This document shows positions 45,457-47,811 of a stretch of DNA of 64,000 nt, one piece after another. The position numbers and the translations under genes were made by a program. This DNA is from Octopus bimaculoides (Eukaryota). The stretch is from assembly GCF_001194135.2 (NCBI RefSeq), contig NC_068996.1:27778107-27842106 (forward strand). Reading direction: 5' to 3'. The notes under the pieces are model-generated. The model was given only the letters and a program-made list of their open reading frames with translations. It searched no databases and was not told the DNA's origin. Each line of letters starts with the position of its first letter. Position 1 is the first letter of the stretch.

Positions 45457-46688
45457 CTGGGAAAAATATTCTTATGAATTCTTATAAAAAATCTCATGAA
45501 AATATAGGGAGAATTTCTATCTTTCAATCCATCGCACTCCAAAAGTTGTATAAATGATTTGTTGAAGGAAAAAAAAAAAGGCTGGACAGCAGTAGCTGTG
45601 ACAACTCTTTGAAGTGTTGCTGCCACTATTCAACAGTTTCAACTTTTTTTTTCCCCCATAAAATGGGAAATGACTGTTTTCTTTNNNNNNNNNNNNNNNN
45701 NNNNNNNNNNNNNNNNNNNNNNNNNNNNNNNNNNNNNNNNNNNNNNNNNNNNNNNNNNNNNNNNNNNNNNNNNNNNNNNNNNNNNNNNNNNNNNNNNNNN
45801 NNNNNNNNNNNNNNNNNNNNNNNNNAAATAGTAATCATATTAAACTGCATTATTCCATGGGTTCTATGCAGTCTGAATAGAGCTATACATAATTGCCTTG
45901 TATCCCCCAGGCATTCTATAAAAATTGCATGTCTGTGATTTATATCTTGTCTTTTGCCTAAAGATGTGTTTGGTATGATTAAATGTATCTGATAAATTTT
46001 TTGCTATATTGTGGTTCACCTGGTTATTGTCTGATATTTATTGTCCAATCTGCATCACTTAAAAAAATACCAGGCATCTTTAAATTCTATAGAGAGAATA
46101 TGTGGATTTTCAATGAAATTGAAGTTTTTCAATAAAGTTTTAAAGTCATCATACTGTGGTTGTCATTCAAACTCTTTTAATTGTAATACCAAACTTTTTT
46201 CTGAGCAAAACATGTGTACACACACACACACACACACACACGTACGTACGTACGTACGTACGTACGTATGTTCAGACATACTCTACAGAGAATTATCTTT
46301 CTTACCCTGTGGCATGTTAAAATCAACTTTTCTATAAACCATTGTGTGCTTTGTGTCTATACACATAAAGGAGGACTATATATTCGTATTAAACTATTGT
46401 GTGGAAGGTTTAAAAATACATTATCAAGGATCTAAAATGTATTTATTGCAATAATAATTACATTATTTTCTTTTCTCTTTTACTGTTGTTTAATGAAATA
46501 TCTGAAAATGTTTTTGAATGCTTTTTTTTTGTTAAAATTGCTTTACATTTTATGCTTAACTGTTTGTCTTGAAAATAAAATGTAAAATCAAACAATATCT
46601 ATTTCAATTTGATTAACCATTGCTTTATTAATATAATTACACATGTATCATTCTTTATTTTCTTTTTCTTTTTACCTGCTATCTTCAG

Positions 46689-46706
46689 TGAGCGACAACT
46701 TTTTCG
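46689..46706 (+). CDS. MAPK8IP3: 18-nt microexon (VSDNFF) immediately before the LZII exon
   Basis: tttttacctgctatcttcag|TGAGCGACAACTTTTTCG|GTAAGA; phase 1-1; 258-nt AG-free zone; gives [11 protein letters not shown], compared with vertebrate JIP3 [11 protein letters not shown] (recalled). Confidence 0.88.
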
Positions 46707-47811
46707 GTAAGATTACTGTCCTCAGCCCATCTCTCTTTAAGTTGTTGCTTTGCAGCATTCAAGCACTGTTGAAGAGGCTTTAAATATTGTCCTTTTTTAA
46801 ATTTTTTTATTATTATTGTTAAATAGATCTCATGATATGGTTTATAATATAGCATTATATAATATCCATAAGGAAAGAAAAAAATTATGCAACAAGGCTT
46901 GACAAGGATTGTCTTTTGTGTTCTTCCATGTCTTGCTACATTTCCTTGGATGTCTGTGTTTTTTGTGCACGTGTGCACATGCGTGCACACGTTTGCTTGC
47001 TTTTGTATTTGTACTGTTTTCGTTTTGTTTTATGTCCTTGTAAATATCTGTACCATTTGTGTGTGAATTCTTGATGAATCAGTATTCTTTATTTGTACTG
47101 TTCTGTTGGTCATTGTCATTTTATGTTTGACATTCTCAGGATATTAAAACTGTTATGTTGTATATGAATCAACATATTTTGTAACTTCGATGTTCTTACA
47201 TTAAAAAGTGTCAACATTATTTGTCAAGTGTTCAAATTGATTTCTTGTAACATAGCATGTTGTTGGCATTTTTATGTCTGATTTGTTCAATGTTGTAAAC
47301 TGCTTTCTGTCAGTCTTTGTTGTTGTGTATGTGTGGTCTTGTTGATGTTATTCTTCCAGTAAGTCCCAGTAACCTACTGGGTCTAGTCAATCAACTAGAA
47401 TTCTTCTCTGCAAACACATGGTCCTGTTTCTGTAGAGTAAATCATTACTGCAATCATTTTACCTTGAGTATTAGGATTTAGCCCTGCAAGCTCAATGCAT
47501 TTTTCACTGCAAATAGCATTGATTTTTGTACTTTCTCCTGATACATATTTAACTCAGACATTGTATTTTTAGTAGCATTTCTAATAGACACCCATCCAAC
47601 GCATCAAGTAGGCAACTAAATAGCTGAGTTGCTAAAATGAGTGGTTGAAATCTTTTGAGCTAAATTAATTTACACATTTAAGATTGTAAAATTTTCAATC
47701 CTGTACTTCACTATATAGTATATTTTGAAAATTTACACTAAATCACAGCATCAAAAAGTGGTTTTAAAAAACAATGTCATATTGAAAATATAAAATATCT
47801 AGAAGCAAATA

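Follow-up and report, generated by a model that had tools for sequence, protein, structure and literature searches.

We analysed a 64,000-nucleotide (nt) stretch of the Octopus bimaculoides genome (contig NC_068996.1, positions 27,778,107 to 27,842,106 of the forward strand; hereafter the window), which carries on its plus strand an orthologue of JIP3/JIP4 (syd/MAPK8IP3/SPAG9) identified by tblastn and protein searches. The homologues retrieved carry the JIP_LZII domain (PF16471), JIP3 and JIP4 chains of the PDB are matched with E = 2.5e-54, and the exons in the window are collinear with the Mytilus JIP4-like protein P0128. The gene is most similar to molluscan JIP3/JIP4, and its very long introns and the low GC content suit a cephalopod. 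JIP3 is a dynein and kinesin adaptor required for the axonal transport of lysosomes and autophagosomes, and variants of MAPK8IP3 lead to a neurodevelopmental disorder. The element studied here is an 18-nt exon encoding VSDNFF, which lies in a 32-kb intron of this gene. We consider it likely that this is a genuine, frame-preserving cassette exon of octopus JIP3/JIP4 that is orthologous to the microexons of flies and vertebrates and was inherited from the bilaterian ancestor.

Exon chain and splice-site anatomy

Three short exons, designated B, B2 and C, lie between exon A, which encodes a Spindly-type motif, and exon D, in which leucine zipper II (LZII) begins (Table 1); C is the 18-nt microexon. 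Exons A, B, B2 and C each end after the first base of a codon, a G, and the phase in which exons B, B2, C and D begin is the complementary one. The frame is therefore kept in any combination of the three cassettes, and exons C to G, when spliced, translate without a stop. Within the 32-kb intron, the microexon is the only phase-1 AG...GT unit found by scanning for a peptide ending in [FY][FY]G. The VSDNFF exon appears to be the last of three phase-1 cassettes (36, 33 and 18 nt) in the linker between the Spindly motif and LZII. Exon B is homologous to the arthropod segment SWVHPGEYASS, the sea-star segment VDPSEFS and the vertebrate 12-nt GEFS exon, and the candidate exon B2 resembles a segment of a Mytilus protein and the segment DSEDEKEDRNSL of the ENA fragment P0305. 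Exons B and B2 both lack the long AG-free zone and UGC layout of the 18-nt exon.

We counted AG dinucleotides directly on the plus strand, in window numbering, and read the splicing elements off positions 46200-46950. The earlier note had described an absence of AG from 46429 to 46686, followed by a long pyrimidine tract, a TGC before the AG, an 18-nt exon and a CG/GTAAGA donor (the slash marks a splice junction). Our count reproduces the AG-free run exactly, at 258 nt between the AG at 46427-28 and that at 46687-88, and every other element is found in its described place. The run is the longest AG gap on either strand of the window, in which the median gap is 13 nt; the second-longest on the plus strand, at 215 nt, falls inside a repeat/N stretch. 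When 200 sequences of 64 kb were simulated with a first-order Markov model, none contained a run of at least 260 nt (mean maximum, 154), and shuffling the G-poor segment on itself gave P(no AG) = 0.0005. Chance is insufficient to account for a run of this length. The AG-free zones of four constitutive exons of the same gene measure 47-128 nt, and a check of eight further long AG-free zones in the window found no short exon with a strong donor behind any of them.

Branch-point-like TTAAC/TTAAT motifs at about -76 to -56 inside the AG exclusion zone are candidate branch sites. The U-rich tract (ttctttattttctttttctttttacctgctatcttcag) reaches the acceptor and contains UCUU motifs at -37, -28, -22 and -7, that is, four in the last 40 nt. 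As judged by inspection of the sequence, the G/GTAAGA donor matches U1 at -1 and +1 to +5. This anatomy agrees with the cis code published for exons controlled by the eMIC domain, a code that combines an extended AG exclusion zone and a long pyrimidine tract with a UGC near the 3' splice site (Torres-Mendez et al. 2022), as the earlier note had proposed in assigning the exon an eMIC/SRRM-type layout. The octopus exon is below the 27-nt limit and preserves the frame (18 nt, phase 1-1), its UGC lies between the tract or branch point and the AG (T at -12), and its long AG exclusion zone accompanies a pyrimidine-rich tract (258 nt, 85%). Its donor may also correspond to the strong 5' splice site of the SRRM3/SRRM4/Srrm234 programme; it differs in that the tract is U-rich with UCUU and not alternating UCUC. 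In flies, eMIC exons have weak donors, the strong 5' splice site belonging to the mammalian programme (Torres-Mendez et al. 2022). In a 2025 preprint, a UGC lying between the AG and the branch point or tract proved important without being absolutely necessary.

We also scanned the window for the combined layout, setting thresholds of at least 80 nt for the AG-free zone, at least 75% for pyrimidine content and at most 51 nt for the exon, and requiring a GTRAG donor. The microexon is the sole match on the plus strand. Because the minus strand also gives one match, with a 10-nt exon, the layout by itself is only moderately specific, and is suggestive but not decisive. It is the coding content, and not the layout, that makes the case for the exon at 46689-46706.

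Table 1. Exons and splicing elements of the octopus gene in the window, with the 18-nt exons found at the loci of five other animals (L numbers denote those loci)
Feature	Position	Strand	Description	Basis
Exon A	21752-21837	+	Constitutive, 86 nt; IYNEF Spindly-type motif; encodes ...ESIYNEFAMQDSDLIGDVDFGADIT/G; phase 1 end ..NNESIYNEFAMQDSDLIGDVDFGADIT/G	Splice sites read directly
Exon B	22556-22591	+	Cassette-type, 36 nt, GSAVNPGEYASS, phase 1-1, G-SAVNPGEYASS	Homology, splice sites
Exon B2	29220-29252	+	Candidate acidic cassette, 33 nt, phase 1-1, ESDKENDREST	Predicted: similarity, splice sites
AG exclusion zone	46429-46686	+	258 nt	AG count, simulations
Polypyrimidine tract	46651-46686	+	U-rich, ttctttattttctttttctttttacctgctatcttc	85% pyrimidine in -43..-4
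UGC motif	46677-46679	+	T at -12 from the exon, between tract and 3' splice site	Read directly
3' splice site	46687-46688	+	AG	Read directly
Exon C (microexon)	46689-46706	+	Cassette, 18 nt, TGAGCGACAACTTTTTCG, phase 1-1, (V)SDNFF(G)	Frame, orthologues
5' splice site	46707-46712	+	GTAAGA, G at -1 (TCG/GTAAGA)	Read directly
Exon D	54645-54702	+	58 nt, GT ATG GGT..., LZII start	
Exon E	56521-56577	+	57 nt, LZII	
Exon F	57860-58007	+	148 nt, LZII, SEHEIMREEINSLQ...ADEE	
Exon G	59156-59346	+	191 nt, RH2 domain	
Diploptera punctata (cockroach)	L002 46036-46053		TTAATGACAACTTCTTTG, VNDNFF	
Drosophila sechellia	L007 6262-6279		CTAACGACAACTATTTTG, ANDNYF	
Ixodes pacificus (tick)	L006 9148-9165		TTACTGACAACATTTTCG, VTDNIF	
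Priapulus caudatus	L008 14126-14143		TCAGCGACACATTCTTCG, VSDTFF	
Liparis tanakae (teleost) JIP3	L003 8992-9009		TTCGTGATGATTTCTTCG, VRDDFF	

Several other features of the window were recorded. An (AC)n repeat and then an (ACGT)n microsatellite occupy 46218-46268, some 420 nt 5' of the microexon and immediately outside the AG-free zone. Runs of N (assembly gaps) stand beside microsatellites at about 45690-45830, 9590-9630 and 51650; the AG-free stretches at 45635-45830 and 51565-51780 are products of such N runs and microsatellites and are not biological. A minus-strand open reading frame that overlaps the microexon (46688-47029) has no support as a gene. Remnants of transposons in the long introns include a mariner-type transposase fragment (33417-33728, minus strand; PF01359, E = 2e-19) and a reverse-transcriptase fragment (39152-39598, minus strand; PF00078, under the gathering score), with which we group a 285-amino-acid open reading frame at 44324-45178 (minus strand) that has no Pfam match. 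A low-complexity open frame of 152 codons rich in Pro, Glu, Ser, Thr and Val (9039-9494, plus strand; QPVPQNETTAVTVDSEKVQTEKSAEV...) has no match in the Mytilus JIP4-like protein or in Pfam, and could be a lineage-specific exon of a disordered region or simply an open frame.

The 18-nt exon in other animals

We compared the genomic loci of annotated homologues, seven including the window; the echinoderm and bivalve evidence is at the protein level. Five of these loci, from a cockroach, a fruit fly, a tick, a priapulid and a teleost, contain an orthologous exon (Table 1). All five exons are 18 nt long, in phase 1-1, have a G/GTAAG donor and occupy the same intron, which in the window and in L002, L003, L006, L007 and L008 runs from an exon ending ...GAD[IL][TL]/G to the G-MGKE exon of LZII. 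The encoded peptides share the pattern [VA]-x-D-[ND]-[FYI]-F, and the Priapulus exon is identical to that of the octopus at 14 of 18 nucleotides. By our own rough estimate, made without computation by any tool, four or more identities in six residues would arise by chance with a probability of about 2e-4. The tick exon was recovered with a scan looser than one demanding an [FY][FY] ending. Taken as a whole, these correspondences lead us to regard the exon at 46689-46706 as the orthologue of the 18-nt microexons of Drosophila syd and vertebrate JIP3.

In the teleost Liparis, the VRDDFF exon (ttttgcctccag/TTCGTGATGATTTCTTCG/gtaagg) directly precedes the GMGKE exon, and a 12-nt GEFS exon lies upstream of it at 8302-8313. 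Together, GEFS and VRDDFF reproduce the corresponding stretch of mammalian JIP3 in PDB 8pr2_B, and these residues are present in the JIP3 used for the cryo-electron microscopy (cryo-EM) structures 8PR2-8PR4 and 8PTK. The earlier note's parallel between the octopus exon and vertebrate JIP3 in length, phase and position is borne out by this sequence and by the Liparis exon, which does not lie at a different position or in a different phase. Its suggestion of bilaterian ancestry likewise finds support, in the cockroach, Drosophila, tick, priapulid and teleost orthologues and in sea-star, bivalve, snail, mite and horseshoe-crab proteins. The Liparis exon has a UGC at -9, a tract that is 88% pyrimidine, an AG-free zone of 99 nt and a G/GTAAGG donor. 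The vertebrate pair differs from the octopus arrangement in its upstream companion, which is 12 nt long as against 36 nt in octopus; the fish loci examined showed no sign of an acidic exon between the two. We take the GEFS and VRDDFF pair to be the 9-residue insert of the JSAP1 splice isoforms.

Shorter derivatives of the exon also occur. An exhaustive AG...GT scan of carp spag9 (L001) yielded a candidate 15-nt DLNFF exon (13206-13220) and a candidate 12-nt DEFS exon (12861-12872), both skipped by the annotated carp model; a narrower scan of that intron, limited to peptides of the DDFF type, gave no match. As far as these candidates go, JIP4/SPAG9 seems to retain the same exon pair in shortened form. 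A UGCAUGC lies just upstream of the carp DLNFF acceptor. A compact mite-like genome contains a 12-nt DNFF exon.

At the protein level, the motif stands directly N-terminal to the start of LZII in Mytilus trossulus, Candidula, Tetranychus, Tropilaelaps, Limulus, Daphnia and Lepeophtheirus, and it is also present in a Drosophila and a sea-star protein. No clear copy was seen in the tunicate, nematode, flatworm, rotifer and acanthocephalan models retrieved, which may reflect loss or missed annotation. The homologues also include divergent 'SVGAEV' proteins (P0169, P0183 and P0208). In P0010 (Mercenaria, 201 amino acids) and P0305 (211 amino acids, from an ENA contig of 4.9 kb), the microexon peptide is fused to a diverged LZII/RH2 (VNDNFFDTSRERENLI...); both resemble retrocopies, or degenerate copies, of an mRNA that included the microexon.

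Alternative use of the cassettes is evident in several animals. In the sea star Patiria miniata, the segment from ...GASIT to GMGKEV varies among seven RefSeq isoforms (X1-X7), which use VDPSEFS, an acidic exon and VMSPDNFY in different combinations; one isoform is without all three. Three fragments from marine transcriptomes (P0035, P0138 and P0304), with the same N-termini and 92% identity, differ by exactly the six microexon residues or by the choice of cassette. Vertebrate proteins are found both with the insert (PDB 8pr2_B) and without it, and the Lottia model skips the exon.

The fly exon has been studied experimentally. The 18-nt exon of syd was described as a neural microexon of the fly whose knockout causes hyperactivity and fertility defects, with inclusion, as percent spliced in (PSI), measured in neural tissue and ovary (Mantica et al. 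2026, bioRxiv 10.64898/2026.09.05.749416). Both guide RNAs used in that study map to the D. sechellia locus (L007), at 6200-6219 and 6335-6354, with 0 and 1 mismatch, and flank the ANDNYF exon; the published fly exon is therefore the orthologue of the octopus exon. The same exon can be recognized in VastDB as DmeEX0009788 (syd, 18 nt), which has flanking introns of 505 and 486 nt as against 499 and 485 nt in D. sechellia. DmeEX0009788 is classed as 'eMICsens' (Torres-Mendez et al. 2022, table S2), a label for exons whose PSI falls by 10-20 points in eMIC-null brains or rises when human SRRM4 is expressed (Torres-Mendez et al. 2022). The fly exon matches that of the octopus in its intron 5' of the LZII exon, its length, phase and G/GTAAG donor and its peptide (ANDNYF against VSDNFF); it too is preceded by a UGC and by an extended stretch free of AG, which measures 176 nt in D. 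sechellia. It differs in having introns of about 0.5 kb, compared with 17-24 kb upstream and 8 kb downstream in octopus, a UGC at -23 and not -12, and a weaker pyrimidine tract (62%). Regulation and phenotype are those measured in the fly.

Across the seven loci, the AG-free zones measure 91-258 nt in five, values that reach or approach the 99th percentile for AG gaps in the locus concerned, and a UGC is found no more than 40 nt upstream in six. A UGCAUG stands upstream of the carp and priapulid orthologues.

Origin and regulation of the exon

One alternative, that the octopus element is a pseudo-exon formed by an AG and a GT that happen to face each other in a T-rich intron, could appeal to the one match to the layout on the non-coding strand, but it is effectively refuted by the conserved V-x-D-N-F-F peptide in the correct phase, by the uniqueness of this unit in the 32-kb intron and by the presence of the same exon in six other genomes. 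A more substantial challenge comes from the proposal that protostome and vertebrate microexons are independent, convergent 'type I' events in a hotspot intron. The syd/SPAG9/MAPK8IP3 family has been presented as a hotspot of independent neural exon events, with separate events inferred in the arthropod, deuterostome and vertebrate ancestors; the JIP3/syd exon was not scored as ancestral, and only two neural exons, in APBB and MADD, were inferred to be bilaterian-ancestral (Mantica et al. 2026). Convergence would also fit the absence of the motif from the tunicate, nematode, flatworm and rotifer proteins and the variation in exon length (12, 15, 18 and 24 nt). However, mollusc, insects, tick, priapulid and teleost agree in the length and phase of the exon and in the boundaries of the exons on either side; VSDNFF and VRDDFF are identical at four of six residues and similar at one more; the sea-star PSEFS-VMSPDNFY is an intermediate form; and the neighbouring cassette (PGEYASS, PSEFS or GEFS) is co-conserved in the same order. 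Moreover, the inference in the preprint concerns tissue-specific regulation and was made with an automated exon-orthology tool, and its authors concede false negatives arising from their own criteria (Mantica et al. 2026). We therefore regard convergence as very improbable. Mouse Spag9 has at least two 12-nt exons, MmuEX0044508 ('Neural') and MmuEX0044509 ('ASE') (supplementary table S2, PMC8797185), and the existence of several distinct microexons in the gene family may explain why exon-level orthology is difficult to call. The APBB1/2/3 (6 nt) and MADD (9 nt) exons resemble the present one in being very short and frame-preserving, in belonging to neuronal adaptor or signalling proteins and in having orthologues in protostomes and deuterostomes. 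They differ in that a formal test found their inclusion to be neural-specific across vertebrates, insects and outgroups, whereas for the JIP3/syd exon it is the orthology of the exon that our comparison shows.

Two further alternatives accept the exon and dispute its control. It could be real and ancestral but constitutive or broadly included in octopus, and not a neuron-specific switch controlled by SRRM234. The annotated cockroach, Drosophila, Mytilus, Priapulus and Tetranychus proteins all include the exon, inclusion in the fly ovary is substantial with a neural specificity common only to the hoverfly (Mantica et al. 2026), and the fly exon is only eMIC-sensitive. Skipping is nevertheless seen in the sea star, in crustacean-type transcripts, in vertebrates and in the Lottia model, and an 18-nt exon with 258 AG-free nucleotides ahead of it and a UGC at -12 has the layout of regulated and not of constitutive exons, the constitutive exons of the same gene having shorter AG-free zones; broad inclusion in octopus thus seems unlikely to us, though it deserves to be taken seriously. 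Alternatively, splicing could be governed chiefly by relief of PTB-type repression or by Elav, Nova or Rbfox, with SRRM234 in a minor role. The four UCUU motifs close to the acceptor, the UGCAUG upstream of the carp and priapulid orthologues and the loss of fewer than 20 PSI points by the fly exon without eMIC would accord with this, and parts of the published literature describe many neural microexons as repressed by PTBP1. Set against these points, a motif scan for Rbfox and Nova that covered the 300 nt flanking the microexon on each side found no GCAUG and few YCAY motifs, and the position of the UGC and the AG-free zone fit the eMIC code. We judge predominant control by such factors to be about as unlikely as broad inclusion.

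Other observations weigh against our reading of the exon as an inherited and eMIC-responsive cassette. The tick exon has no UGC within 60 nt upstream, and the AG-free zones are merely 50-66 nt in tick and priapulid; because of these weaker layouts, the cis arrangement is not uniformly conserved. By itself, the layout yields about one chance match per 64-kb strand. The fly orthologue is eMIC-sensitive and not eMIC-dependent, and SRRM234 is therefore probably not the sole regulator. In the published comparison, four eMIC exons occupy equivalent positions in fly and mouse, none of them from syd, and the eMIC-dependent mouse Mapk8ip3 exon among the rows listed is a different one, of 24 nt. No homologous protein of more than 77% identity was retrieved, and none from the same species. 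The structural role discussed below rests on a model of medium to low confidence and on the residue assignment of the authors of the cryo-EM work. A zebrafish study of a mapk8ip3 microexon is not counted as evidence here, as the accessible part of its text does not name the microexon that was deleted.

Place in the adaptor and evolutionary meaning

LZII binds ARF6 and kinesin light chain. The Spindly motif of JIP3, LYHEL (382-386), binds dynactin p25, and LZII has been modelled from residue 406 onwards (Singh et al. 2024). By our count on the sequence used in that study, residue 406 is the first residue encoded by the microexons, the E of EFSVRDDFF. The IYNEF of octopus exon A is the equivalent of LYHEL, and with LZII starting in exon D, cassettes B, B2 and C therefore make up the linker between the two. 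In an AlphaFold2 model of P0004, a crustacean-type fragment, the LZII helix runs back through the microexon residues with predicted local distance difference test (pLDDT) values of about 53-79.

These features suggest how the exon might work. At 18 nt it would be too short for ordinary exon definition; the distal branch point, the long U-rich tract and the UGC at -12 could recruit the eMIC isoform of SRRM234 in neurons, with the strong G/GUAAG donor assisting inclusion, and the UCUU-rich tract may allow PTB-type repressors to silence the exon outside neurons. Inclusion would put V-S-D-N-F-F immediately before GMGKE, where the six-residue insert might lengthen or re-register the N-terminal end of LZII and add an acidic-aromatic patch. 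It may in this way tune the coupling by the adaptor of dynein-dynactin, kinesin-1 (through kinesin light chain) and ARF6 on cargo, a possibility also raised by Mantica et al. 2026. For octopus, we infer both regulation and function from the cis anatomy and from the fly orthologue.

The exon itself was already known in fly and vertebrates; what the present comparison would add is evidence that its origin, and that of its companion cassettes, goes back to the bilaterian ancestor. A bilaterian origin is supported for the exon, and ancestral neural regulation is something we only infer. The age of the exon suggests a history that runs somewhat against the view of this gene as a hotspot of convergence. 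The fly and mammalian microexon programmes have been published as sharing almost no exons, with four at equivalent positions and two bilaterian-ancestral. To these would be added a rare, deeply conserved case in which the length, phase, position and most of the peptide are the same in molluscs, arthropods, priapulids, echinoderms and vertebrates.

More tentatively, and with somewhat less confidence than doubt, we suggest that this may be the third neural microexon traceable to the bilaterian ancestor, after those of APBB and MADD, that its eMIC-responsive layout may have persisted for more than 500 million years as part of a three-cassette 'tunable linker', and that the inference of convergence may in part be an artefact of orthology calling. 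Automated exon orthology may under-call the ancestry of exons this short. If the suggestion is correct, the linker cassettes would determine how far the dynactin-binding Spindly motif stands from the LZII that binds ARF6 and kinesin, and which contacts the two make. The exon lies at a mechanistically defined site, the Spindly-LZII linker, and its knockout in the fly has a phenotype; it would thus offer a testable handle on why the exon is needed in neurons.

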